A stretch of DNA of 61,629 nucleotides, filler included, from Sluysia triapertura (lineage: Eukaryota): the NCBI GenBank assembly GCA_046118255.1. It is 5 parts of 5 records of this genome, joined end to end, with 100 filler letters (N's around TTAATTAATTAA, not from the genome) between each part and the next. Parts side by side here need not be neighbours in the genome. Positions count along the whole stretch, not along the records: positions 23,628 to 38,030 come from JBJNIA010260734.1; 4 more parts are not named here. One strand, 5' to 3'. The position numbers were made by a program, and so were the translations under genes. The number at the start of each line of letters is the position of its first letter. Position 1 is the stretch's first letter. The notes under the pieces were generated by a model. The model was given only the letters and a program-made list of their open reading frames with translations, was not told the origin of the DNA and ran no database searches. Positions 1 through 38,500 of the stretch are shown here, piece by piece.

Positions 1-3000
1 CAACGAAGTTTATAATACTTCATCTGTTACTTCTCATCAATTCTTTCTTCATTTGTAATTCTATATATTCTTTACTCATCTCTTAATCTAAAGTTGGGCA
101 ATCCCAACAATTGTATCTGTTTAAAAAGTAATTTTATGAAATTAAAGAATGACTTTTTTTAATATGCTGAAATTCATGGTATATTTGTATTTCATCATCA
201 CACAAAACAGTAATCGAAGCATAAAGATATGTATAAATACAATCTAAGATATAGATGTACTTTATGGATCACGACCATCAAACAGAAAATCCGCACGTTA
301 ATTAGTGGTGGTAAGCACTGATGTCAACGTGTTAAAAAATTTAAAACAATAAACATTTCTTGTTTACGTATGTGCATCAAATTGAAAATAATTCAAAGAT
401 ACGATCTTGTCAATCAGTACCATTGGTTTCAAAAAATCAGTCAAAATATTTTATTAGTTTCAAACTAATAATACTTCATTACTGAGAAAATTAAATATTT
501 TTCATAATGATATTTTGAAAACTTTAAGAATATCTTAAGTCTTAAAATACCTTTAAGCTTGTAAACCCTTAATATCATTTAGATCTTGTAAACTTTTAAA
601 CATGTATGAATCTCAGGTATTTTTGTAAGTAAATCTTTTAGATACCTAAAATAAAATTATTATTAATAAAAGAAAATTAATTTAACTGATCAATCATTAT
701 CATAAATAATTTAAAAAAGGGTATAGAGTAGAAATTCTAATCATACATTAATTAAGTAAAATTTAATTAACTTAATTAAAAAATAAGTTATTATAAAACA
801 ATGTTTGGATGATGAATGTTATATTAAAATAATGAATACGTCTGAATTCGTTTTAGCCAGACATTTAGAAAAAGGTAAAATTTGACGTAGCTCATGCATT
901 GAAAACCTTAATATTCAGCAGAGTCCAATTTTAATTAATTAGCAAAACTAAGATTATGTAATGATATGATTTATATGAATGTGAATAATTTAGAAATGAA
1001 TTTCAGATGTTTATGATATAGATTGAATGAAAATAAGAAACTTAAAATATGTTTTTATTAGAAAACTGGCCACGAATTAATAAATTCTAAATAAATAAAT
1101 TCTAAAAACTAATATGTAGTTAATAATATATATAATTTGTTGTTATCAACAGAGAACATAATATACGTTGATCAATAGCGTGTTGATCTAAAGTTTTATA
1201 ATCGGTGTGCCTAGAACAAAAATCTGACATCCAGTGAATGTAAGGTAATGCCATTACAAAATTTAAAAAATAATAAAATGTGGAAGTCGATTGTGATGTT
1301 AAAAATTTTTTTAAAAATAAACTTTAGATAAAGCAAATAAGTTTGGCAGAGTTGCAGAGTAACTTTCTCGACAAGGAATTTTTAATGCAATACGTATTTA
1401 ACTTGTAAAGATCTAAAAACATTATAACTTTTAACTCTTAATACACATCGTTGTAATATTACAATATGCCATTGAAATGGCCTCAAAGTCATTAGTATGT
1501 TTTATAATTATCATTATCGATATGATATATTTTATCGAGTGGCAACACATTCTTTTCTTTCGAGACTGTTAAATGTGAACTTGACATTGACAAATCGATG
1601 GTTAGAGAAAGTCATGCTTAATGTGTAAAGAAAAGATCATGCATTTAAGAGTTAATTCAAAAAATATAGGTAATGTGAATTAAATTCAACAATTTATATT
1701 CAATACAAAATTTTACCGACCTATCTCTAATTACAAAATTTTAATAACCATGTTAAAATGTGTAATTCAGTTAAATTCAAATATAAAATTTATGCTATAC
1801 TAAATGGAATTTAGATTTTGTTTGTTTTAGTTTAAATAAATAAGCTCAAAAGTTGGTAAAAGTGTTACATTATTAAAAGTAAATAAAACCTGTAAGATTA
1901 TTCTACTTCAAGATACAATTTAACAAAAACCAATTATTATTAATGGTATTTGTACAAGAATATAATTGGGTTGGTGTATTAAAATAATAATTTGAATATG
2001 TTTAAAGTAATCGTCCGTTTAATTAAAGTAAATACCTTGTTTCAACATGAAAATATTTTTAATTTTTATTAATATAAAGATTGCTTTGCACTTTTTGGAA
2101 AATATGACTATTTTTAAAATTTAAATTACATTTTACTCTATAATATGTTTTATTAGATGTTGGTAAAATATATTTATATTTTATTTGCCAAATGAATTAT
2201 TATAAATTATTTTGTAAAAATGCTAATTTTCGTTTATATACATTGATATGGTGTACTTCAATTTATTTTTTATATGTTAATAATTTTGAAATACTTAATA
2301 TAAATTGAAATTTAAAATATAAAGTTATCTTTTAACAGTAAAATATAATATCAAAATTGTTTTTAAATTTTTAGTTCCATCATTTTTATTAACTGTTTTG
2401 TTAAGAATATAAATAGTTTTTATTAGCATAATAACTAATGATTTATATTTATCAAAATAAAAATGATAAGATTAAATCTGAAAATAACATTATCAAATAC
2501 AATAAAAATAATCGAAACATGACGACAAGACCAAGCTTATTATTTATTATTATCACCTGTATGTTTTATCATTATATAAACACTGTCAGGAATGGTACCT
2601 AGTATAATGACGATAAAAAGAGTATATTTTAGTAAATAGAAATAAAGAATAATCACAAAATATCCACAAAGTAATTTATATTCTAATCAATGCTTAAATT
2701 TTCTTTTATATGATATTTGATGGTTTGCAATCGAAACTATTTTAAAAATGACAAATATTATTTTGTGTATTAAATGCGCTTTAAATTTGAATTTATATAA
2801 AAATGCTAATTTTATCAAATTTTGTTTAGTATCAGCCACTTGACCAGTAATTTATCGATTGTAACTAAATTATTATATTCAAACTCATATCAAACAAATG
2901 GTCTCTCGTGATTGTGCTTGTAATCTATCATTAATTTAACCTGTATTGTGCTCTCTAACTATCCTAAATATTATGTGTGCAATAATCTATATCCAATTTT

Positions 3001-3164
3001 TTGTTATTTGATTATAAATTATAAATTTGATGACCTTACAACAATTGGATTATTTTCTCAAGTTTTATTAAGTTTATTTCTACCACTCGTTTTGATAATT
3101 TTATTCAATGATTTCAAGTGAGTGTTTTTAATTATATATAACCTCTTATGTTCCAATAATTTAG

Positions 3165-3749
3165 CCACTTCAGAAATAATGGGTTCAAATGCTGACAATA
3201 ATTGTCAAACTATAAACCTTAATATAAATAATACAATAACTAAAGTTGAACAAAACATCAAGTATACTAATAATATCAAATTAGTAAATATAAATAATCC
3301 CAATTTTAATAATGTAAGTTAACACTTTATATTAAAATTCTGTTAAGACTTTTATCTTATCAATTTTTACGTAGCTTCAATGTTCAAATTCCAACTTAGT
3401 CGAAAATCCGGAGACGGAATTGACAAGTTCTGCTTTACTGATGTCATTGATAGATGAAAATCAACCTATTTCAAGAACAACTAACAATACAAACAGTTCG
3501 TTGTATATTGAACGTAGCAATAATGAGGTGAATGAAGAGGATGAAGATGATGGTGTAGAATATTGTGAAGAACCATCATTACAACCAGTTCAAAATCCTT
3601 ATACATCTGAAATACAGTATAACCAAGGTTTAATCGGAAATGATATTTATGAACGTAGTTATATAACAAATGAATATGCAGGACATCCAATGTCGTTTAT
3701 GCAATTATTGGATTCTCCAAACTACGGACAAGTTAGATTTTATGCATAA
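3165..3749 (+). CDS. Last two exons (3165-3313, 3375-3749) of an unknown Asn/acidic low-complexity protein
   Basis: Two ORF-track frames are joined in phase by a 61-nt GTAAGT...TAG intron (3314-3374). There is an AG acceptor at 3164, an acidic tract EEDEDD and a stop at 3749. No family recognised; the 5' exons are unresolved. Confidence 0.6.
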
Positions 3750-21007: not shown

Positions 21008-24000
21008 TTTTATGAAGTTTAACATTTTTACTTTTACAAAATACTATGAAATGATCGGTGATGATATAAATAGGCATACACATCAACCATTGGCAAGTTT
21101 AGTACTAAAAAATTCAGAATAGATTGATTAAAAAAATTGAAAGAACACTCAGGCAGTCTCTTACCTGTATTTTGACTCCTGTGAATAAATTTTCAGTCTT
21201 TCTAAATCACATGGTGACAATTTGAACGTTATTATTAAATTATAAATTTCGAAGGACGAAGGTATTCTGATAGTCGTCTCAATTTAAATCTGATATCTGA
21301 CATTTGATTTATCATAAAAAGTTTTATCAATATAAAACACGTTAGATTTTTATTATTAGTCTTCGATATCCCTAAGAGATATTTAAAATAGACTTTAAAT
21401 ATTATTTAATTGTTTATACGGTCAATTATTAATACTTAAAGTTTATAATAACCTTAATACAGTAAACAGCAAAAAAATAATATCATTAACTGTTATTTCT
21501 TAATTTTTTGTTATTGACCATATTTGAATAGTTAATCTGTGTTATTCATTAACACTAGATTTACCAGGAATTTTCCATACCTATTTATACCTATTTTTTT
21601 AGTATTATTTAATTAACAAAAAAATAAAAACACTTGCGAAATTAGTGCATTTAGTTTGTGTGGCAAAAGTCAGATATTGGTTTTTAAAATAAATATACAA
21701 ATTTATATAGAAATTTAAGTAATTTTTAATCAAACCAGTCAAAATGACTGGTTTGGTAAATCTAGTGTTAATAATCATCCACTCGTAACTTGGAATATCA
21801 GCAACTTTCAAAAGACTATTTTAAATAAGTCTACAAAATAAAGGACTTATTTTTAAATTATATATAGTTATAAAATAACATAAAATCGGTTGAATAATCG
21901 TTTTTGCAGAATTCATTTTAAATAGTCTCATCAACTTTCTTTTTTAAAGTCCTATTTTACATGAAGATATAAAATTAGTTTATATATTAAATAATTGATT
22001 ATCATAATAATAATTCAACCAAATCATAAACTCCATTGTGATAATTGTCGAAAATATTAGACATCCAGTCTAATCATACAAAAAGAGAAACTTACTATGG
22101 AACGTCTATAAGTCGATATTTTATTTTTAGACAAAAATCCTGTAAACAAGACCTTGATTGTATGACTTTAATCGTATGTTTTTTCATTGTAACTAATTAT
22201 GATTAAAACTGTATTCTAAGAAGTGATTTATTATTCAAATCAACATTGATCCAGATATCTGAGTTTGGAGAATCAGTCAAGGATCCGACTACCAAAATAT
22301 TCGTAGATTCAGATTTTGTTACCACAGGCTTTATTATAATTTAATATTAGGCATAACTTCTTACTTAAAATGTTTACCTTGTATGCTAACTTACGTTAGT
22401 GTCATAGTATAACTATCTATTCTATATCATTGTATTATTGGTTCATATTGTAATTGGCTTGAATGATACTTATACATATTTACAATTAGATACTTTGAAT
22501 TGTGTATACTTTTATTGTTGAAGAATTAATTAAGATAAAGAAAAAGATCTATAATTGTTAACACCACTAAAAATTTACATAATTAATTAAAAAACAAAAC
22601 TCCTAAAATAATAATACGTAATTGGAAAAATTATTGAATTTCTTTTAAATTAGTGTGAGCTAAAATATAAATCCCGATTATTTGGTGAAATAAGAAGAAG
22701 CATTATACGTGGATCTAAAGTTTAGAAGATATAAGATTGTTTATAAGCGAAGACGAAAGTATAAAAAAACTTCGTGTAAGATTAACGACTTTTCTAAGAC
22801 ATCTTAAGAAAATTGTGAACTAATTAAGGTATAATTTTGTAAAGATATTTGATATATTTTTATTTCGAATTTTATTTATGTAAAGTATTTAAAAATTATT
22901 TGAAATTATCATATTTAGTATTTTATTTGTAAAATATTTAAAAGTTATTATATTAAATATTTGAAATATAAAAAATATTTAAAATTATTAAAATATTTAA
23001 ATATTATTATTATTATTATTATTATGAAAACATAAATATTTGAAATATAAAAAATATTTAAAATTTTATTATTACGAAAACATTATCAAATATTATATTG
23101 TTTAAACCTTATGTTTCTATACAAACCAATTGTTGGTAAACGAAAAAAATAGTATAAAAGTAGCGAAGATATTTATAAATTCTCATTAACAAATTGATTT
23201 TATAAATTTTCATCAACAACAAATTGATAAATTAGTTTTCAGTGCTATAAATTTATTTGGAGAATATTGTTCTGAAATCTTGATAAGTTAACGAGAAGAC
23301 ATTTAAAAAATTTCTTATAGAAAAAAGAGATTACAATTTCGACAATTTTATTATTATCATAAATCGTTAGTCCATTATTATAATTAAGTTTAAAATTTAC
23401 ACTGATCATAAATTATACTTAAAATTAATCTAAATTTGTATAATTTAATATACAATATAATTTAAAGTTTTCTAAAATTCAATTTTATAAATATTAATTA
23501 TAAATTAATATTTTTGAATTTTTGCACNNNNNNNNNNNNNNNNNNNNNNNNNNNNNNNNNNNNNNNNNNNNTTAATTAATTAANNNNNNNNNNNNNNNNN
23601 NNNNNNNNNNNNNNNNNNNNNNNNNNNGAATGATTTACCTTAAGCGCTTTTGAGTACTTTCGCGGTAGATATAAGCGCAATATAAATTAATATATTATTA
23701 TTATATTATTACCCGAATAGAAACTGACACAATTAATATGATAAATGAAAGAAGTTGATGATCATGTTAAGCACTAAACAAACGCAAAAGGTGACGGTTT
23801 CATAAGAATCAGTCACAATTAGTAAGACAAAACAAAGCATTTTAAATTTAGACCTCATAAAATTTGAATTCGAGTTTTCTATTCATAAACGACTGACTGC
23901 TACTTCTTGATCGTGAAATCTAGGAATAAGAGATTATAAAATAAAATAAACAGTACTGTTATCTTAATTATTCGAAATTTTCTAATATTTACAAAATGAA

Positions 24001-25189
24001 ATATTATAATTAAAATCCAAAATACCAATTCGCCACGAAACCAAAACAAACTCCGACATTTTAGTTATTATTATTATATTCGAATTTCTTATCGGTTTTG
24101 TCAACAAACCCAAATCCTTATCAACATTTTCTCCCAAAAACGCTTATCAAATGTCAATAGAAAGAAAAGTCAACTTTACTTTTTCACTGGCAACTTTTAT
24201 TAGATATTTTCGTTATTTTTTGTTGTAAGTAGTTAAATTTTAAATAAATTATTAATTTTCAAATTCAAATTTAAGACTTATAATTCAAATGTGACCAAAT
24301 AATGAAAACTATTGTTAAAAAATTATAAAATAGAGAATGAAAATGTTTGTGAGTTATTATATCTACTTTTTAGAATACTACTGACAAAACTGCTGGAATC
24401 TGACTGTGGATATTGCCAGTAAGAGTGAGACTGATGAATGAAAGAAAGAGAGAATGAAAAGGCTGATAAAGCAACTCTGAAATTATTAATTTGTCATATC
24501 TCCATCCAGTTTCATTTATTTTCAGTTACTCATTTTTCATACATTGATAAGATACCACACATGTTATATTCTCTCTCTGCTACTGCTGCTGCTCTTCATC
24601 CCCAGCCGTTCATTGTAGTGTGTGCAGTTGGAACAACTCCATTCCACTTTTAGTGTCAGTAGTTTTTATTCACATGAATAATTATTTCAACGATCTTATT
24701 TAGATTTAGATATTTCGAAAATTGATAAAACATCACATTCACTCTCATTGTGCTTTCCGCTAGACGTGGATAAACTTAATAATAATGTATAATAATCTGG
24801 ATCCGTTCAAAAATAATCGTGAAATATACTTTTACTTTCCGAAATGTAAGAATGAGGAAGCGCATTATTTTCGATTTTATAATAACATAAATCAGATAAT
24901 TCGAAATTAAAAACACATGCGCATAGTGAAATCAAATTCTGAGCGTGTCAAACAATGAACTGATGATTGCGCAACATCTTTTGAGTCCGTTATTTATTGC
25001 CGTATCATTATCGTCATCATGAAACACACAAACACGCATACATGCAAGTTATTGAAATCCATAGTGACAGCAACCAACTGTACAGACTCGTACTAACAGC
25101 ATGCACGTACAAGCACTGGTCTACTAATTAAAGCACACATATTTATCGTCACATTGTTCTCGTGTGATGTTTGCTATGATAATATCGAA

Positions 25190-25300
25190 TATGATTGGCT
25201 AAATAACATTTAAAATCGCATTTCAATTGACCAATTAAACAACAAAATTGATGTAGAAAGTGATAAACACAGCATCAGCGATAACTTTGCTATAAATATT
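25190..25300 (+). promoter_or_regulatory. Candidate core promoter of the Blimp-1-like gene
   Basis: Inverted CCAAT (GATTGG ~25193), CCAAT (~25231) and TATAAATA (25291), 64 nt before ATG 25355. Motif evidence is weak in AT-rich DNA. Confidence 0.4.
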
Positions 25301-25354
25301 TTAAGTGAATTGTTTTCTCAAGTTTCATTATTACTTCTGTTTATTGTTCATAAA

Positions 25355-26313
25355 ATGTTGGATCTATTTTACCGTGAAAAGAGTTTGTTTTTTTAATAAC
25401 TTTGAACATTATTACTGTGCTTCCAGAAAGTATCACTCCGATTACTGGTCTTCATCTGGACCTGGATCTGGAATTATCGAATGCCACAAAGGGCGATCTG
25501 AAATTTCAAATCGTAAACGGTCTTTATCTGGATCAGGATAACAACAGTGAGCTGTGTCTCAAATCTGCTATCACTGTTCCCGAGAACAATTGTTTAGCAT
25601 TCCTTGGATCCGATGTAAGTACAGTTAATACTTGTAGTAGTATAAATTATTATTATTGTGGCATCATCGCCGATATTAGTGTTAGTATTATTTTGCAGAT
25701 ATATTCGTACGATAAATCGAGATGGTTCAACTATCTTCTGTCTCCTCACGACAAAGAATTCGCTAATGTAATCCTAGTTATTCAGTTGCAGTACCTCTTT
25801 CTTATGTCTATACGACCGGTTCTGCCTCATCAAAGACTCACAATCCACTCTTACAATACCACAATGACATTTAACAGCTGGAAATACAGAATCTCCACCT
25901 TGCTAGAATTGCCGTCTTCTGTGAATCTTTTGCAAGAAACCTCTTCAACCTCCTTCGTAACCCATTCTAAACACACATCTATCACCAAATCGATCAAATC
26001 ATCAAAATATCAGTGCAACATCTGCGACAAAGTATTCGGCCAACTGTCAAATTTGAAAGTGCATCGTCGAACTCACACCGGAGAAAGACCATTCAAATGT
26101 CAACTGTGTGGCAAAGGGTTCACTCAATTGGCGCATCTTCAGAAGCACCATCTGGTACATACTGGTGAGCGTCCATTTCATTGTCAGGTTTGTCAGAAAC
26201 GATTCAGTAGTTCCAGTAATCTAAAAACGCATTCTCGTCTTCACAAAGAGTTTTTATCGAGTTGTGAGTCACAGTTGAATTTCAAAATAAAAAATGATTT
26301 CCATCAAAACTAA
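25355..26313 (+). CDS. prdm1: Blimp-1/PRDM1-like C2H2 zinc-finger transcription factor (degenerate PR-like N-region, three fingers)
   Basis: Fingers with [24 protein letters not shown] and [10 protein letters not shown] (26008-26244) are the Blimp-1 finger 1-3 signatures. Likely start is ATG 25355 with a short intron ending at CCAG 25426, plus a probable 84-nt intron at 25615-25698. Confidence 0.9.
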
Positions 26314-27110
26314 AACTCATTTTGAAAATAAAATTCTACTCATCACTATCGTAAGATCTTCAACAAATTCAGATTTTGTAAATATATATTGTATTTTTAG
26401 TTTTTATATGGATTATTTAATTTCAAACGTATTCGAATTTTTACTTCTTTGTATTTTTTACAACACAATGAAAAAACTTGACATAAATAACAATAATATT
26501 ACCGAATGAATTTGAATTACATGTAACGAAATCTCATAAACAATAACAAATTAAATAGGGTCATTATTAAAACAATTTTAAGGTCAAAAAATGCATTTGA
26601 TTATTTAATTTTAATAGTAAAATTTAAATTAATTTGTCTTTCAAAAAGCAAAAACATAAATTTATTTTTACTTAAATTTTAAATTTAAATTTTCTGATAA
26701 GTCTAATTGAAAACGACTCCATTGTGGATTGTGTGATTCAAGGAACATAATTAAAATGTTATTAAAATACAGAGTTTATATTCAATATTAAAATTATGAC
26801 GTCTCTATAATTAAATGTTTTTGTTAGCACTGAATTTATTTTTCAAATTTAAGATTACGTCTCTGTAACCAGTTTGATAGGGTTTCTTTTCAAATACAAA
26901 ATATTGCACAATCATCCAAGTAATGCTGCATGCAAAAACAATAATATTATAAACATACTAAGTTATACACAATACTGCTATACAATATCCACCATGTACA
27001 ATTAGTCAAAAATCCTTAAAGAATTTTGTCTTCTTTCAAATACTTTTATTACTCAATTGTAATATTGGGGAAATATTTATTTTTTGTCATTATTCTTTTA
27101 TGTCTCGTAG

Positions 27111-27268
27111 TGTTGGGGTAAAAGGCCTAAAGTGCCATTAGGTAAAATTGACTATAATAATAAAATAACTTTGTTAGACTGGGCTGATAGCTCAGTGGTA
27201 AAGCATCGACTGCGCAGACAGAGGTTCCGGGTTCGATCCCCCGACAGTCCATTTTATGAAGTCTAACA
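27111..27268 (+). mobile_element. Solo tRNA-bearing LTR (158 bp) with perfect GTAG TSD; tRNA-like core at 27181-27251
   Basis: GTAG|TGTTGGGG...GTCTAACA|GTAG; homologous along its full length to both TRIM LTRs. Confidence 0.92.
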
Positions 27269-29764
27269 GTAGCGACAAATACTTAATATTATTAATGTTA
27301 TGATTTTCAATTCCTGTCTTACTTGTATTGGTAACTAGTGTAAATCTTTAAGATAAAGTCTTAACTGAGATGTTCCAGCGTCCAGGAAAAAACAAAATTT
27401 GGCGCCCTTTCATACAAAAATACACAAATTTACTGCGAATTAAAAAAATAGTAAAAAAGACAAAAAATCAAAATTGCACAATAAAGAACTGTGTAAAAAA
27501 TTTATTTATTTAAAAAATAATACAAGCGATACAACATATGGAATAACATAACGGGCACATTTGATGAATAAGCGAGAACTTTGAAAAGTAAGTTATGCTA
27601 TTCTTGTTGCATACGTGCGACGTATACGATCTTTTCTAATGCTATTTGTCAAAAATTCAATAACATAGTTAATTAAATTATTTTTTTGAAAATCAGTTTG
27701 TAAACAGTTTACAATATTAAAATAATTAGCGTTGTGATGTTTATTTGGTATTATTAAAGAAAAAAATCGATTTTAGTTTATAAAATCTAAAAAAGTAATG
27801 AATGTAAAAAATATTTTATTTTTATATCGGCGTTCGGTTTGCACGCCCTTTATCCACGTTGGTTTTACGTGAACCTCAGTTAAAACTTCATTAAAAATTA
27901 TAAGAAATTTCAAACTCGAAGTTTCATTAAATTAAGATTTCAACTTCCTCTATACTGATATTAAAATTGACTCTAAAATGGAGTCAATTTATCATATTGA
28001 CAGTTAAAACTTTATAAAAGGACTTAGCGCAGAAAAGCCGACTTAATCTCATTAATGCCTAATAAAAATAATTATAGGCTGCATAGAATTTAAGTATGCA
28101 GTAGAATTTGAAATAAACTCTCCCTACTTTTCATTATTCGACATTGAGATTGAAATAAATCTTGACTGAATTTGAAACTGATTTGTTATTATTAAATGAT
28201 AACTATTAATTATTCATAGGTAACAGAGATTACTTGAAAGATTTTTCTTTCTTTTTATTATCTTACAAAAATAAATCAAATATGAGTTCGCCTGTGCTAC
28301 ACGCTTTATATTCATTTCCCGAGGGCGTATCTAAAGGAATTTTGTAAAAGTATTTTAGCATGGTCTATATTACTGTTATTCTTAGTTGTTCCTCGTTTAA
28401 GTGAATATTTATTCTTTGACTAAAAAATTAAAGCAAATGGAAAAATCTTTAAAATTTATTAATAAAACATAAAGCTTCTAATCAATATTAAGATGTGACT
28501 ATTATAAATTTTTCAATAAAATATTTAAATACAATAAATATGTTGTATTAAGTCAATACTTAATATAAAGTCAAAAGTTTAATGTGATTTAAATTAGGTG
28601 CAAACATTTACCTTGATTTTAAATATTCGTTTAAAAAAGGTGAAAACCTATTAAGTAAAGTTTTAAGTACTCTTTTAAATGAAACAGCCAAATAGGATTA
28701 GCTTCGCAAATAACTACAGTTTCCACTAATATAAACGCAATTCAACGATATTGGTCAGAGATAGATTAATTGTACTGATCCACAAAAATTCAAATCAATT
28801 GTGAAATTAAGAATAAATCAACTGTGTCTATTTTCAATATGTCTATTGTACCAAATCAAATCTCACTTAATTTCTACAAGATTTAATCGATGTTAATTTT
28901 TTCTGAAGCCGAAGCACTCGATAAATTAAACAGTATTAAATCTAAATTGGCATTGTTTAAAATAAATAGTCCATTGATTTTATGTTTAAATTATCATTGA
29001 AATGATCATACACAACTCATTAAAGCAGAACCCAGTATTAATTTCTATTTTCGTAATTATAAATTAAAATAAAAATCAAATGACGATTACGAGTATTAAT
29101 TTCCTAAATCAATCAAACATCTAGTTACAAAAAATGAAATCGAAAAATGTCTTAGTTGTGTGTTCAAGGATGTACAAGGATCGATAAAAAAGATTTGAAA
29201 TAAAAGTATATCCATCACTCTTTAAAATGTTTGAAAAGTATGAATCGATATTGGGTTGACAAAACTATGTACGTTATCGATATCGTAGACATTTCGATGT
29301 AAAAATGAAAACAGTTTCACAGTTTCGTACAAATAAATGTGCAGTTATGAATAAAATAAGAGTATTAATGTTTCGTCTTTAAAATTACTGGCTATTACCA
29401 CTCAATATTAACTTGGTTAGTTTAAAGGAACCTTAATAATTTAAATAGTCAGTATATCAAATATATTTTTGCAATAATCTTCTCTTATAATATCAATAAC
29501 TATTATCCCCAAATTTAAGTACTTGACAATCAAAATCAAAACTAAGTCAATAATGTACTATTAAACAAAAATTCGTAATAACATTTATTACTAATGAAAA
29601 TCTTTACTAAATGATGAGAATCACTAAAATGACAAAAATGACAATAATGTTTATAATAAAATTAAAGACACTACAATGTAATTAAAACAAAACAACCAGG
29701 AGCGACGCAACAACCAAAAAAATCCAGAAAGTTTAGGATACTAATGATAATTAGAAATATTTTT

Positions 29765-30030
29765 AAAAAATAAATTGGGCAGAGTGGCTCCCTCTAAATT
29801 GACTTACAATTAGCTAAAAATGAAATAGTTTATTCAAAATACTTTAAAAATAAATTGATCAGAGTGTCTTCCTCTAAAAGTATTTTTTAATTAGCTGAAA
29901 AATCAAATATTCAATTCAAAACACTTTAAAAATAAATTGGGTAGAGTGTCTCCCTCTAAATTGAATTACAATTAGCTAAAAATGAAATAGTTTAATCAAA
30001 ATACTTTAAAAATAAATTGGGTAGAGTTTT
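29765..30030 (+). repeat. ~80-bp tandem repeat, about 3.3 copies
   Basis: AAAAATAAATTGGG(C/T)AGAGTG(G/T)CTCCCTCTAAA...TTAGCT...CAAAATACTTT recurs near 29765, 29845, 29927 and 30007. Confidence 0.9.
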
Positions 30031-30249
30031 CTATTAACATACCTTAAAAAACTTAAAATTAACTGAAAATAATGTAATATTAAAATTATCCAAATTAAAA
30101 TAAAATTAATTATTTATATTATTATAATGAAATAATAAATAAACAAAAATTACATAAATTTACCCTAAGTATGGATCTTCTATCATCATTGTTGACATCG
30201 TTGTTATTGTATTATTATTGTATCATTATTGTATTATTATTATTATTAT

Positions 30250-31310
30250 TGTTGGGTTGTTAAAATTCTGAAATCTCTCATCATCCAATCAATTCACAAT
30301 CTCACAACCAAACACTCTCACACAAATCATTCAAACCTCTTTGAGAATCCGACCGACAATAACAACTTTGACAACTACATGGTACGATCTGTCAAACTTT
30401 ATTAGGTACAATACATAGAAATCTGATTTATTATCAGCCATTCCTTCCTTTTATTCTACTAAATCTATTTTTTTCTTTAATTACTTCTCACATTAAAATA
30501 GTATTATTAACATACATAAAAATAATGAATTTAATTTCACATTTTATTTAATTAATTTTCTATTTTTCACACCCAATTTTCTAATGAAAAATGTTTTAAG
30601 GTTCTCATTCTCAAACGAACCATTTTACAAACATTTCGAACTTACTTATGGATTCTCCTTTTTCAGAGCAATAATCTCATATTCCATTCATCATATTTGC
30701 ATTACTCTAAGTATTAAAAATTCATCATTCCATAATTAAAAATTAATTAAAATTTGACTTTTATGAACTCGTTCAAACCATACCTTCATCGAAAGGTCTT
30801 TTCAAAACAAATGCATATACAGTTTCAAATTTAACATAGCATTCCGCATTCACAAGTTATTCACAAAAACATACTTTTTCTTAAATAAGTTAGTTAAAAT
30901 TTTTAATTAATTAATCTATTTTTAGACTTAATCTTATTCTATGTTTAAAGGTTTTATTGAGGTTCTAAAATTTTTTAGTAGTTTATAAGGTATTCAGGAG
31001 GCTCTAGATGTTTTCACCTTCTAGGTCTCAGATGATCTAAAAATTAACAAGCTCAAAGGTATTCTAATGCCTTCAAAAGTTTTTCAAGTACACTTCAAGT
31101 CTCCACAAGTTCTCGACATCTTATATAGGTCTTTGGAATGTCAAGGTACTCTTTAGCTGTTATAATTATTATAGATGTTTTTATTTTCATGATTCTTTTT
31201 CCAACAATGTTTATAATTTCAATCTATCACTTTGTATCAACTCTTCTTTCACTTTGTGATTCTACATGTCTCTTACTAATCTCCTAATCTACAGTTGGCC
31301 AATCCCAACA
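30250..31310. mobile_element. Candidate ~1.06-kb LTR of a longer family (TGTTGGG...CCCAACA); related fragments at 1-48, ~500-660 and ~17200-17266
   Basis: 7-bp terminal inverted repeat. The end ...CTAATCTACAGTTGGCCAATCCCAACA matches ...TTAATCTAAAGTTGGGCAATCCCAACA at the window start, and 31020-31090 matches 510-590 inverted. No TSD seen. Confidence 0.55.
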
Positions 31311-33169
31311 AAAATATAAAAAGGAATACCAAAAAAATTTTTACCTCACAATTAATAATGCAAAATGAATTTTTGAATTTATTTTATAATTAACAATAAT
31401 ATTATTTTGGAGGATTTTCTTAAAATAGTTTTTGTTTTTGAGTTGTTTTGGGGAAATTTATATTTGATTATCGTGAATAATTAATATTTTTCTTAGTGTT
31501 GCGTCACTCTGGTTTTCTTTTTACACGGGTTGTTAACATTATTATAAAAGTTGTTAACTTCCTTTTAATTGTTTATTTTTAGTTGTCCCATTTACATTAT
31601 TGTTAAAGAAGAGATCTACTGTAGTAATTTTTTGTAATCATTAAATTATTGAGTTGTTATTAAATTTATTTTCAAAAACTTGATTTTGGGGTGAATAATA
31701 AGAGCATTACAGCAAATTTATATTTGATATAGTGAGTACTTAAATTACTGAGATTCTTTTTAAACTAATTAAATTGATACTGATTTACCGTAGCTAATAA
31801 TTTTCAGCAATAATAAAATAGTTATAGTAAAAGAATAATATTAAAACAACAATAATACATTGTAATTAGAGAAAATCATTGAAAATAAAATAGCAAAATA
31901 GCAAATAATAGCCTCTTTGATAATTGTTTTATTACTACATTATTCTGTGACTATTTTTGAAAAATATAATTTTTGGTTGATTGAGTGTATTGAATTGAAA
32001 TTGTAAATATAATTTTCAGCTTTTGATTTTGTACCTCCATCTCGAATAGCGAAAATAACTGAGCTGCATGATATTCAAGACTTAAATTAATTTCAAAATA
32101 AGTTTGATAAAAAAGAATGTATTAGATTTTCCAGCCAACTCTTGAAATTTGCAAAGATAATTTTGAAATTAGTGAATCTTAATATTAAAAATGTTTTATT
32201 AAAGTTCTAAATCATTGCGCTCTTAATGAAGATATAAAGGTTTAGTTTTTATCAGAATATTCTCATATAATGAAAACAATGAAAAATACAAAAAATATCT
32301 TTAAAATTTTCTAGAAATAATCAATGTATGGCTTTCATTGGAATGAATTTTCATGCATTTCTATATAAAGTTTTACTTTTGCAGCGAATTATTTGTTGAA
32401 TGCCAGTTTTAATAGTAATAATAATAGTTATAATAAAAATAATAATAGTAATAATAATTAAGCAATATGATATTCTTATGTAACAGTTAAATGTTATTGG
32501 TGCTGGCTATGCGGAAGAGCATCTGCTTAATAGCGGTTTTTCTGGTTCAGCAACAAGTTGTAGGAGACAACAAAGAAATAACACGAAAGAAATATTTCAT
32601 TCGATGTTACATATCTCATCTTCATACAACCATTATGGACTAGAAACCTCACATTAAACTACATATAAGCTCTAACAACAATATCTGTTTTTACCCACTA
32701 ACAAATACACCGTCTTATGCTAAACTCACTTCACACATTACCAATTCATTACACTTAACACAATTACAAATCATAAAATTTTAAACTATAAGATTTTATA
32801 ATAAAAACCTAACGTAACTATTTCAAAATCATAATAACGAAACATGTTAATATTAAGTTTTTTAGTACAGTGTTGTTCGGGTCCCAACAACACCATTTCA
32901 AACCATAATGTCATTTTTAGTTCATTTTAATCTGTATATTATAAGAATGACTCGTTATTTTATTTTTCACGATGTTTTTGAGACTATTTTATTAATTAAT
33001 TTTACTATGATGTAAAATTAAATTTAAATTTAAATGTACCCACAAAGAAACTTACAGATTAATTAACAAAATCAGCTATTCCAGCGAGTGTTAATGTTTC
33101 AACAAATTTTCTCACGAAGTTTATCAATGCAACAGGTTCTTGAATTGAGTAGAACTCGTTAAGGATATC

Positions 33170-33330
33170 TGCAAGTTGAATCAATCAGATTTTCTCATTT
33201 ACTTGTTTTATGATTAAAATTATGTTTGTTATTTTTATAAAATTAATGTATTCATCACGGTATTACAGTAAAATTAAATACGTTCAACATGATAAAAAAA
33301 GTTCAAATAAATCAGGACTCACGGGGTTAA
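33170..33330 (-). repeat. Interspersed repeat, inverted homologue of ~52605-52735
   Basis: Shared TGAGTCCTGATTTATTTGAACTTTTT...TTGAACG(T/A)ATTTAATTTTACT...ATAAACAAGTAAAT. Confidence 0.7.
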
Positions 33331-34464
33331 CAATTTCTAAAAATTCTTATTCACAATCTTAAAAAAGTATTTTAACGTACTGGTAGTTTTACTTATTTAT
33401 ATTCAAATTTATTACATTAAAATTTAATTGCAAAATGTTAATTTAGTTGTAATACGTGTTCATTCTTTTAACAAAAATAACAAAATATGAATAGTATCAT
33501 AAATAAAAATATAAATGAATCACCTTGCAATAAATGAATAAGTACTCAGTAAAAATAAATATTTAGAAAACATTTTAAGAAAATCATAACTCTCCGAGAA
33601 ATATTTAATGTAATAAATCTCATAATCAACAAAGAAATGATTTCAAACATTCATTAAAGTAAAACTGTATATCAAAAGCACTTCGAGCAACAAACATGTT
33701 TCTTAAAATTAAAAAACACGTAATCGAAAAAAGTAAACTAACTTAAAATAGTAATAAATTTATGCATCCATTATGGCTTCCAGTGCACATTTGTTAAAAG
33801 CTTCGCGTTGAAATTTAAATAATATCATTTATGTTTACCATATTTTATTATTAAGCACGTAATTTTATTTATTCATTACACTTCAGGCTTAATTAAGCAT
33901 ATATTTTAAATAGAGTTACTATTTTCGAAATCATACCAAAAATTAAGTTTTACCGCTATTGTTTTTAGCTGATTCTGACGCATCATGACCAACCGTAAGA
34001 TTATAACCTAACTTAAAAATACATTAAAAATACAAAGTACCTTACTTTAATGTAATAAAACAAATTCTGTTTTGAAATAATATATAAAACTAATGTAAAA
34101 ATCCTTAATTACCATGAACTTAACAAAGCAAAAACTATAGATGCAATAACATTACGAAATTTCCGATCACCTATGATTTAAAATTTGTATAGATATATTT
34201 ATTAGGAAGTAATTTTCAAATCTAAGTATCGAACTTTTTTTGACATCATTCTGGATTATAATGTTTTGTAAAAATTTATATTTAAATAAGCAAATGAATT
34301 AAATACACAATAAATTATATAAATTTAATAAATAGTTATTAATAATATTTAATAAATATTTCTACTGGTTTAAGTCATTATTTTACTACAAAATAATTGC
34401 AAATTTAAAATCTATATGAAAAAAAATATATATATAAATCCATTGAAATTATGTATGTGCAAAA

Positions 34465-35567
34465 ATGCAGATACGGTTTAAGATTGAGAATTTCATAATA
34501 CCTGTTGACAATGAGACTCAATTTAAAGAAGCTTTTCTAAAAGCTATTAAATTTTGTCAACAAGCCAAAGAACAAATTGATGAAAATATTAAAAAACTAA
34601 AGGCTAATCACGCTGATAGGCGAATAATAATTTCTGCATGGAATCCTTTAGGTAATAATATCAATGTTTTAATTATTATTATTTAAGATAAAAAGGATAG
34701 CATATATTCTATTATTCAATTTTTCTTTTTCGAAAATAAATTATCTATTAAAGTATTTCAGAGGACATCTACTAGTGTATGTTACTTAATTTGTACTTTT
34801 AATTTTTATTTAGCTTCATGTATTAGCTGATGAGGTGTCACCTATGGTTTTATTTGTTTATATGATGTGCAAGATTACTAATCTTATGCCACATATGTAT
34901 GTTCATACTTTTGGATTACATAGGAAAAAGGTTAAAGAAGATCATGTATTTCCGACATTATCAATCGAACATTTGGATATTTTAGATATTTTGCAATTTA
35001 AATTAGAATACTTCAAATTAAATTTTGGCAATTTGCAAAAATTAGATATGGTGAGTAGATTTGGAAAGTCCTACACACATACATATATTCATGAAGAATT
35101 ACAATATTTACATTTAGTAGAAGAAGTTTTAACAGAAGGAGTATTACTTCATGACCGAACTGGAGTCGGAACTCTATCACTGTTCGGTCCAGAAATGAAA
35201 TTTTCATTAGAAGATTATAATTTACCATTACTAACAACTAAACGTGTTTTTTATAGAGCTGTTATTGAAGAATTATTGTGGTTCATTCGTGGCTGTACAG
35301 ATTCGGATGAGTTAGCGAAAAAGAATGTACACATATGGGATGCAAACGGATCTAGAGAGTTTTTGGAAGCTTGTGGTCTTGGACATAGGGTTGAAGGCGA
35401 CTTGGGACCCGTTTATGGATTTCAGTGGCGTCATTTTGGTGCTAAATATGTGGATAAATATACTGACTACACTGGACAAGGATTTGATCAATTAAATAAT
35501 ATTATTAATTATCTGAAATCAGATAATGAAGATGGAGAAGGTGTTTTAATGGCCTGGAATCCTGCTG
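34465..35567 (+). CDS. TYMS: Thymidylate synthase, tandem two-module form (exons 34465-34651, 34688-34776, 34814-35567; continues through a GT donor at 35568)
   Basis: Module 2 has [45 protein letters not shown] and AWNP. Module 1 has [31 protein letters not shown] and FPTL. Introns of 36 and 37 nt join all three exons in frame without stops. Confidence 0.93.
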
Positions 35568-38500
35568 GTAATATATTTGTATATTAATAATGATTCTAAA
35601 ACATTTTTAAAAATTAATTTCAAAACTCATACTCAACACCTTCTAACAATTTTGTTAAGAAATCTTTTATCTAGTGAATGTTTAGTATGGTTTTACAAAA
35701 TTTACTTGCTTACCTATTGAATGTAACTTATGTACGACTGTTGATTATGAAATCCTAAGATCGAATGCTTTGTTGTGGATTTAAATGTAAATATGTAAGA
35801 GCTCCCTGTCAAATTACTTAGACATTTCAGGCTTTGGTTTTTTGGTGAGGTCTACTGTTAAACCTTAAATACCAATTTTGACCAGTATGCATTCTTGTTG
35901 CAACATCTGCAACATGGCATATTTCTTTTATGGCTTCAGTTCATTTGACTTTTTTCCAATGATTTCATAATGTGATCAAAATTTAGAGATTTGCTGTTGG
36001 CATTTATTATAATACAATAAAGTTCAAGCTTCAATCTCCAAAAAACGAAAATACGTAGTAAGTATATAGTAAATTTGCTCAATTTTATTTTTACACTAAT
36101 AAATTTTGCGGTTAAGAGAAAAATTGAAAATAAATTGAAACATTTTAACTAAACAATATAAGCAATAAAATAAATGTATAATCAAAATTGTTACACCTTA
36201 ACTGACGAATATTTATTACGCTTGCACAAATAATAAATTAGCAATTAGAAAAATAAACAAAATGCAAATGCGATGCAAAAAATAGAAGAGTAAAATCTAT
36301 TAATGTATATAGTAGTTTTTATTAATGTCCAAATTTTAAAAATAATATCTTGTGATGTTACATAAAATATGTATTTAATTTTCTAAACTTGAATATGTAT
36401 ATGCAGGTAACTTTTTTAATTCAAAATTTGTCAAATTAGTTCCTTTAACTTTCCTATTTTTTATTGATTTCAATAAATAGTAAACAAACTTCTATTTTGA
36501 AAACTAAATGTTACATTAAAGATTTTAGATTTTATTATTTTAAAATTTTATTAGAATCTTAATACATAAAAATTTATAGTATGAAAGTATTCTAGAAGAC
36601 CGGATATTTTAACTTAATCACTAGTAGGTATTTTATTTGAGTTTCAGGGATAAGCGTCTCGTTCATCATAAATATTTAGGAATAAATTGAATTTTATCAA
36701 ATGTAAAAAATTACAATCCCATTGACCTATAAACGGAAAAACTCGATAAGAATATATTGCAAACGTTTTGTATTTATTTGATCATTTAATACAAATGTAT
36801 ACTTATATATTGAATGTTACTAATATAAAATTTATTAGGATATTCAGATCACAAGATCACAAAATAACAATTTGAAAAAAATAAGGTGTCTACAAAAGTG
36901 ATGACGTAAATCTTCAAGATATACATCAATTTTATGAATAGCATAAATTAATAAATGTAACGAAATATCAATTTTTAATATGAGATGGTTTGTATGTTTT
37001 TAATGAATAAGTATTAATAAAAATGTTACTGATAGCGATTTCGTAAGTTTCAATTATATAAGATTTTTGTCTTACTTAAAGGTAAGAAATAAATAATCAC
37101 TTTGCGCTATCTTAATAAGGTATTAACGAAATCAATTTTTAAAATCATTAATTCGTTACGATACAATCTAACGAAACAGTTATTTATATTATTTGCAGAT
37201 TGTGATAGTTTTTGTAATTGGTACTCATCGGATTTATCATTTTGTATTTATTTCATTATCTTTCTGAACTATTTATTGTATTGTTTTCAGACGTTTGTAT
37301 TGATTGACACTGAAAAAGATTAGGTTAATTTATAGGTTATAGTTGCAATTATTTAGAGTTAATTACAGAGAATAGCAATAAATCAATATTAGTGTAGAAA
37401 CTTATAATAGGTAAATAAGTCGAAGATATTTAGTAAAATATTTGTAAGAATATTAGTCTGAGCTTGAAACAAATCATTAATAAAAATAAGATTTATAGTA
37501 AAGAAATGTAAAGATAAAGATTGCAGTAATTTGAAACAAGTTAAATAATAAACATATTATTAGTGTAAAAGAAGATTTGTTAATATAAAGATTAAAATAT
37601 TTTTGAACTTAATTACCTGAATTATTAAACACAAAAGTGTCAAAGAAGTTAGACCCTCACCAATAAAAATTTAGCGAAACACTATAGGTATGTCTTTCTC
37701 TAGAATATAATCGTATATTGTAGGTGAATTCATATTAATGAAATCATTTTGCGTAGTGTAAGTCGAAATTAAAGAAAAACAGCATTTCTAAGGATGGTTT
37801 ATGTTGCACTTACTCTACAATATCTAAACATTCATTAATATTCACTTAAATATTCACTTAAAAAACTAGGTGCAATAGTATTGTCATAGTTGTTACCAAG
37901 TGAAGAGCTGTGGGAAATATTTTATTGTTTAAATTAGTATTATTAGTTTTATCTTTTTTATTTTTATAAAATTTAAAAGATCTTAAATTGAAATAATTAA
38001 TTAATTTTACTATTAACAAAAAGGGCTTAANNNNNNNNNNNNNNNNNNNNNNNNNNNNNNNNNNNNNNNNNNNNTTAATTAATTAANNNNNNNNNNNNNN
38101 NNNNNNNNNNNNNNNNNNNNNNNNNNNNNNATTTGTATCTTTATTCTCACTTTCTTTAATACATATATTAGAGTGCTAATACCGTTTTTTATAACTAAGT
38201 AAAAATATTTCGTTAATAAAGCAGCAGACCCTCTACTTGTGATTTAATTCTTTTGAATCAGCAAATCGTGCATCAAGTTTAAGATTATTTTTTCGTAGCA
38301 TTGACATATTATTTCCTATAACTAAGTCTTCCGTGCGATATAAAACTTAGCTTATAGGCAGACCCGATAGAATAATTATAATTGTTCAGTAAGATAAAAG
38401 TAAAGTAAAATTTTGAACAATATAAAATACTTACAAATCAAATTAATTTACACAATCAAAACGCTAATTAGCTCCAATGGTTTGTCTTTTTTATTTCTTA

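Follow-up and report, generated by a model that had tools for sequence, protein, structure and literature searches.

Positions 23,628-38,030 of the window, the 61,629-nucleotide stretch of DNA that was analysed as a whole, correspond to record JBJNIA010260734.1 of the Sluysia triapertura assembly GCA_046118255.1. This piece is AT-rich (GC 0.19-0.38), with slight increases in GC at coding stretches only. Its plus strand carries, one behind the other, two regions related to ThyA-type thymidylate synthase (TS): a degenerate region in three exons, here called module 1, and the N-terminal half of a well-conserved TS, here called module 2 (Table 1). Once two mini-introns are taken out, the reading frame is continuous from 34465 to 35567, with neither a stop codon nor a spacer between the modules. 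The first-pass annotation of this stretch had described three plus-strand pieces in one frame that run stop-free into a further TS module, and that description holds, as the frame is intact after removal of the GT..AG introns.

Table 1. Coordinates of the TS-related features, counted along the window
Feature	Position	Strand	Description
Module 1, exon 1	34465-34651	+	ATG start; upstream stop at 34444-34446; ends in phase 1 before GTAATA
Mini-intron 1	34652-34687	+	36 nt, GT..AG, phase 1; in-frame TAA inside
Module 1, exon 2	34688-34776	+	(D) and 29 further residues; counterpart of TS strands beta-iii and beta-iv
Mini-intron 2	34777-34813	+	37 nt, GTATGT..TTTAG
Module 1, exon 3 part	34814-35047	+	Counterpart of helix J, strand beta-v (YVHTFG) and the C-terminal tail (FPTLS...KLDM)
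Junction signals	35042-35056	+	Acceptor-like TTAG at 35042-35045, two bases before ATG 35048; donor-like GTGAGT at 35051-35056
Module 2	35048-35567	+	N-terminal half of a ThyA-type TS, MVSRF...AWNPAG; frame shared with exon 3; phase 1 before GTAATA (35568)
Arg-Arg lesion	35534-35539	+	GGA GAA, Gly163-Glu164, opposite human R175/R176 (E. coli R126/R127)

Two profiles were used for the comparison with TS, namely Pfam PF00303 (266 profile positions, cut-off 24.3 bits) and an HMM of 299 positions built in this analysis from 131 full-length TS sequences. Across these 131 sequences, 58 columns of the N-terminal half are conserved at 97% or above and serve as the set of invariant columns, while the strand map of a canonical TS was taken from an AF2 model with a pLDDT of 90.3. 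A search of public runs located the stretch in one run only (X1), which is DNA-like and kept as Logan contigs, and in no RNA run. The run's own contigs equal the window sequence with zero differences, and the contig spanning 34945-37466 reaches across the boundary between the modules and includes the GGA GAA codons. The assembly at these two codons, for which the first-pass annotation had raised the possibility of an error, is backed by this contig, which has zero differences at 35534-35539.

Exon 1 of module 1 encodes a helix followed by a segment of 11 residues, with DRR at 34615-34623, and matches positions 138-171 of the TS HMM (i-E 8.5e-8). Its score against Pfam PF00303 is 24.1 bits (E 2.3e-5), which is marginally below the cut-off. 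The matches of the other two exons to the TS HMM are weak, at positions 182-212 for exon 2 (i-E 0.019) and 216-284 for the exon 3 part (i-E 0.048). By tblastn, the tail FPTLSIE...NLQKLDM aligns with residues 216-298 of a 302-residue TS (P0042), four residues short of its end. Altogether module 1 spans about 55% of the TS domain, corresponding to TS residues ~140-300, with an overall identity to TS of ~27%. A search of 23628-38030 with module 1 peptides and DNA gave no second copy within the piece. For exon 3, an exhaustive search of 1.84 billion representatives returned 0 homologues. A search of the ESM Atlas likewise gave nothing.

The 169 codons of module 1 contain zero in-frame stops against a background stop density of 8.4% per codon. 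Among background windows of equal length, the stop-free share is 3e-3 for exon 1 (62 codons), 8.6e-2 for exon 2 and 1.7e-4 for exon 3 (78 codons), and the product of these three empirical values is ~4e-8. In exons 1 and 3 GC1 lies well above GC3, a codon-position pattern like that of module 2. The open frame and the excess of GC1 over GC3 together argue that module 1 is a selected reading frame, either now or very recently, and not a rotted relic.

The two mini-introns find independent backing in other contigs of run X1 with a likeness of at least 80%, which break at 34651/34688 and at 34776/34814. Two of the run's contigs skip precisely mini-intron 1 (joint 34649>34686, cut +2) and one skips precisely mini-intron 2 (34776>34814). 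A further contig (34730>34814) carries 19 letters identical to the final 19 bases of exon 2, followed directly by exon 3; it has no intron 2 and also has an in-frame deletion of 27 nt. The breaks at both intron borders and the copy without intron 2 show that the mini-introns are true introns that have been spliced. The pieces of module 1 are thus genuine exons, and paralogues of them occur at other places in the genome, at least one of these copies being without intron 2. The position of mini-intron 1 is homologous to that of the donor following AWNPAG in module 2, and the frame of module 1 is kept only when mini-intron 2 is taken out.

ThyA-type TS, a major drug target, is an obligate homodimer whose two subunits share their active sites, and its half-the-sites behaviour is under debate. 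Its dimer interface is a five-stranded sheet, and R126'/R127' from the partner subunit reach the dUMP site (PMC6514825). The counterpart of DRRIIxSAWNP, an 11-residue segment agreeing with the consensus at 10 of 11 positions, is the best-preserved element of module 1. Counterparts of the canonical strands 171-173, 189-197, 200-211 and 237-246 were found in the AF2-based map, as were those of the helix at 215-233 (helix J) and of the helix preceding RR. For the fifth strand, beta-i (47-58), only the end is represented, by MQIRF against HMM positions 46-60, and this assignment is tentative, the match (i-E 54) not being significant by itself. The earlier statement that module 1 keeps DRR and the sheet strands stands for DRR and four strands, with beta-i remaining tentative.

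The catalytic motifs of module 1 have been lost, as first proposed, and a column table against TS places each loss. PPCH is replaced by a ten-residue segment in which H182 has become Tyr and the Cys column has no aligned counterpart. The Asn of PFN is missing, and the Asp, His and Tyr of GDxHxY fall within an 11-residue deletion. The whole small domain is absent. A TS-like relic on the minus strand at 32530-32658, with a 43-residue open stretch faintly resembling strands beta-iii and beta-iv and PFNIASY, was also considered. It matches TS HMM positions 185-220 at E 0.55, is not colinear with the other TS pieces and was treated as chance.

Module 2 is a significant family match to Pfam PF00303 (150.8 bits, profile positions 2-136) and covers positions 8-171 of the TS HMM. 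In a collection of 5.8 billion proteins its identity to TS is 60-67%, with nothing closer than 67%. The closest solved structure is the TS of WSSV (7xyj, E 3e-65); module 2 aligns to WSSV residues 6-162 and, in the same manner, to residues 28-184 of human TS (1hvy). A viral origin found no support, as the WSSV TS is no nearer to module 2 than cellular TS are. Protein searches with module 2 or with the 244-aa ORF gave no relatives of the fused arrangement, and the ORF of the window has no record in the contig collection that was searched.

DRTG, EELLW, IWD and PVYG are retained in module 2, while its Arg-Arg reads Gly-Glu, just as the first-pass annotation had it; the R-R at this position is invariant in 131 of the 131 TS sequences. 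Those N-half invariants that bind dUMP and folate, other than RR, are likewise retained (a set of 35 residues). Of the 58 invariant columns, 55 are intact, where real TS carry 0-2 changes. The three that are altered (P158N, R161G and R162E) all fall within the NPxDRR, or P..RR, motif, and the chance of three changes out of 58 columns clustering inside five columns is P 2.5e-3. The terminal branch of module 2 has a length of 0.91 changes per site, the median being 0.17, and because of this long branch the tree gives module 2 no supported placement. Neutral decay on a branch of this length would be expected to affect about 20 invariant columns. The 173 codons of module 2 are stop-free at the background density given above. 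That 55 of 58 columns are intact despite such a branch argues that the half-domain is under TS-like selection and that the Arg pair has been released from it or selected against. A constrained TS N-half without both of the arginines that a partner donates calls for an explanation even under modest readings of the locus.

The junction of the modules is compact. ATG 35048 lies 14 residues ahead of HEELQYL, exactly as in the TS of the bee Colletes (P0016), and ATTAAA is found at 35016-35021. Since the tail of module 1 corresponds to the C-terminus of TS and ATG 35048 to the usual TS start, there is no room between them for a 3' UTR, a promoter or a 5' UTR. The TTAG and GTGAGT sequences at the junction would allow separate or alternative expression. 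As the frame of module 1 is not closed by a stop codon, translation of this module, if it takes place here, must continue into module 2.

No sequence corresponding to TS residues 172-299 was detected on either strand of 35568-38030 (2.46 kb) by tblastn or by the TS HMM in six frames. Within the piece the catalytic Cys of PPCH is found in neither module, and module 2 is represented there without its Cys-bearing half. The only live site, proposed for module 2, is therefore not seen in the piece, and both modules are partial: module 1 covers little over half of the domain and module 2 stops at profile position 136 of 266. The remainder of the domain may lie past the end of the piece. An AF2 model of the ORF at 34814-35566 reached a pLDDT of 58.6, with the first 54 residues below 50, and was unusable. 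Very high-copy repeats occur at 33090-33485 (summed contig depth ~1,000-3,200) and at 37842-38030 (~16,600), compared with ~19 for single-copy sequence. The second of these closes the piece and is the probable reason that the assembly breaks off before reaching any C-terminal TS exon.

Over 34278-35069 the summed contig depth in run X1 is 77-279, a figure that the tool flags as unreliable, with contigs of conserved genes possibly filtered. Positions 35070-35465 are covered only by the window's own contig and by one contig that is 81% identical. At face value, these depths, unreliable according to the tool, suggest that the paralogues of module 1 do not carry module 2. Some of the paralogous contigs have in-frame indels of 3, 9 and 27 nt. 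The 81%-identical contig is 546 nt long with a depth of 13.7, and its aligned part, 35295-35510 (40 differences in 216 nt), is the most conserved part of module 2 and excludes the RR region. It represents a second TS-like gene, either of the same genome or of another organism in the sample. As such, the TS of the window may not be the only one, which bears on the question, posed in the first-pass annotation, of whether this is the genome's sole TS.

Arginines are present at the RR position of module 1 only, the Cys, Asn and His-Tyr motifs are gone from that module, and the site residues of the N-half are kept in module 2. The locus could be accounted for by a fused ORF with a built-in pseudo-subunit, a reading drawn from the sequence pattern that we hold tentatively and with somewhat less than even confidence. 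The locus would have arisen through a head-to-tail, in-frame duplication of a ThyA-type TS gene. The upstream copy would have been reduced to the three-exon ORF of 169 codons, keeping DRRIIxSAWNP, helix J and the counterparts of the interface strands, and would read directly, with neither stop nor spacer, into exon 1 of the copy downstream. Purifying selection would have maintained this downstream exon, with loss of only the P..RR motif that is loaned to the dUMP site of the partner. The catalytic half of the downstream copy is presumed to lie past the end of the piece, behind an intron of more than 2.4 kb, and both parts would most likely be made as a single polypeptide. In that case the remnant would pack on the interface sheet and give its Arg pair in cis to the one site that works. 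An intramolecular pseudo-dimer with a single active site would thereby take the place of the obligate homodimer. In this complete form, that of a natural single-chain, monomeric, one-site TS to which a Cys-less remnant lends Arg-Arg in cis, the model is in our estimation unlikely. In a variant, the partnership may be one in trans with the paralogues of module 1.

Several observations support the fused ORF. The lack of a stop codon in module 1 obliges any translation from its start to proceed into module 2, the reciprocal pattern of motifs is that expected if a remnant lends arginines to one live site, and an engineered heterodimer of wild-type and RR>EE chains with one site offers a biochemical precedent. 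Two homologous modules in one unbroken frame with complementary loss of site residues are what a pseudo-dimer should have, module 2 being known from its N-half alone; neither module is a whole fold, module 1 being partial and module 2 ending at HMM position 171. Accordingly, of the duplication, fusion and subfunctionalisation first proposed, the head-to-tail in-frame duplication and the reciprocal losses stand, and the modules are both partial. Other observations weigh against the fused ORF. The C-half is absent from 2.46 kb although the homologous intron of module 1 is 36 nt long, module 1 amounts to only about half of the domain with a non-significant beta-i match, and copies like module 1 exist elsewhere, apparently without module 2. 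ATG 35048 is placed at the start of a stand-alone TS with an acceptor-like TTAG before it, the protein searches gave no relative with the same arrangement, and the unusable AF2 model was also counted on this side.

In a different account, which we consider doubtful, the locus would comprise two separately expressed units: a member of a small family of TS-derived mini-ORFs, of which at least three paralogous copies would lack intron 2, and a TS translated from its own ATG 35048 by way of an internal promoter or of trans-splicing at TTAG. The open junction would then be a by-product of where the duplication breakpoint fell, and the mini-protein might, as a dead paralogue, serve the RR-less TS as a partner in trans, or might be unrelated to TS function. 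The contigs that lack the intron or break at its borders, the in-frame indels of the paralogous contigs and the greater depth over 34278-35069 than over module 2 are in keeping with such a family, and the normal TS distance from ATG 35048 to HEELQYL, the TTAG two bases upstream of it and the ATTAAA sequence are in keeping with separate expression. However, with no module 1 stop ahead of module 2, an mRNA of module 1 on its own would be a non-stop transcript. A junction that is in frame and free of a spacer would arise by chance in about 1 in 3 cases, and its frame would then have had to stay open while many further changes accumulated. The supporting depth figures are those flagged as unreliable by the tool, and trans-splicing is invoked in a host without evidence for it. 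A decaying duplicate is an unlikely source of the same pattern. In that case a working TS would be encoded elsewhere, perhaps by the 81%-identical contig, the C-half would have been lost to rearrangement or repeat insertion, the change of RR to GE would be a single clustered early mutation and module 1 an older relic. The failure to find a C-half within 2.46 kb, the high-copy repeat at the end of the piece, the second TS-like contig in run X1 and the long terminal branch of module 2 all agree with decay, and a homodimer deprived of both arginines would be crippled (PMC5981203, PMC6514825). Decay is nevertheless hard to reconcile with the near-complete set of invariants on a branch of 0.91, on which about 20 should have been affected, with 173 and 169 codons free of stops, and with the coding-like codon-position composition of both parts. 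Moreover, the other contig differs by ~19% in the most conserved stretch, which implies a long separation during which module 2 has stayed intact.

The order of the halves within the ORF, C-half followed by N-half with an overlap of only residues ~138-172, brings to mind a circularly permuted, dead TS-like protein with a non-catalytic role, which after fusion would have shed the N-half of the first copy and the C-half of the second. The ORF would end at the stop at 35585-35587, following a run of 11 residues, and the degenerate C-half and the N-half would form one TS-fold domain. The decayed DRR strand of module 2 would then be a redundant second copy, and no C-half would be expected downstream, where none was found. 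Still, the N-half retains nearly all of the invariants that bind dUMP and folate, which would be needless without Cys, and the conservation of the halves is unequal (~27% against 62% identity to TS). The AF2 model of 34814-35566 gave a permuted domain no support, and we regard this explanation as very improbable.

If the fused ORF is considered beside known systems, canonical TS such as those of WSSV and human differ in having R175/R176 where Gly-Glu is found here, in having no TS-derived extension of 169 residues, and in that the Cys half here lies outside the piece. Duplication-fusion enzymes with one surviving site are known, as in the monomeric dUTPase of herpesviruses, and the AdoMetDC prozyme of trypanosomes is a dead-paralogue partner. 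These resemble the proposed arrangement in logic, in that reciprocal motif loss turns a site-sharing oligomer into one chain or into a heteromer, but they belong to other folds and families. For TS, our literature search found neither a duplication-fusion nor a dead-paralogue arrangement. It also found no TS that lacks both arginines or bears a TS-derived extension, which agrees with the initial remark that no described example was known to its author.

A biochemical parallel comes from the E. coli heterodimer of wild-type and R126E,R127E chains of Falk et al. 2016, which is described as having exactly one site that works, that of the RR-less protomer (PMC5981203). An Arg-less protomer is there served by an Arg-bearing partner, which is the logic proposed for module 2 and module 1. 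However, that heterodimer is man-made and consists of two full-length chains mixed in vitro, whereas the present case would be natural, possibly a single chain, and would have a stripped-down donor. The nearest natural precedent for loss of the arginines is the VAAP-clade TS of Vibrio parahaemolyticus, in which Arg127' is naturally replaced by Gly and which is an active dimer with ~20-fold weaker dUMP binding (PMC6005164). Unlike module 2, this enzyme keeps Arg126', is a homodimer and has no additional TS-derived module. The bifunctional DHFR-TS of protists and plants (PDB matches 8dae and 4eil) demonstrates that TS tolerates a large N-terminal fusion, although the fusion partner is an active, unrelated DHFR and not a dead TS remnant. 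With regard to gene structure, the TS gene of Copidosoma floridanum (L001:6001-7600) has introns after residues ~62, 150 and 237, whereas the introns of the window follow AWNPxG and QRxxxS. None coincide, and the structure is not that of a chalcid-wasp gene.

The observation itself is non-random; its interpretation as a fused pseudo-subunit is an attractive and partly supported hypothesis, resting on a pattern in the sequence. Were it correct, the locus would provide, for the first time, a natural equivalent of the engineered one-site heterodimers with which subunit communication is studied, and a clean case of subfunctionalisation after duplication and fusion in which each half can still be recognised. 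Should the host be a parasite, the enzyme would also constitute a structurally distinct drug target.

Other features were noted in the same piece. Within exon 1 of module 1, positions 34525-34570 (+) match the histone 3' UTR stem-loop model at 21.5 bits against a gathering score of 34 (E 0.052), which is probably chance. A tRNA-like element at 27181-27251 (+) scores 27.1 bits against the Rfam tRNA model, under the gathering score of 29, and its surroundings look like a tRNA-derived SINE. Further upstream, the ORF at 25402-26313 encodes three C2H2 zinc fingers at 25960-26250 (+), given as segments beginning with 20, 19 and 19 residues. These fingers closely resemble those of PRDM1/Blimp-1, a likeness that points to a metazoan as host. 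A protein search with this ORF, limited in query length, returned generic poly-ZF proteins only.
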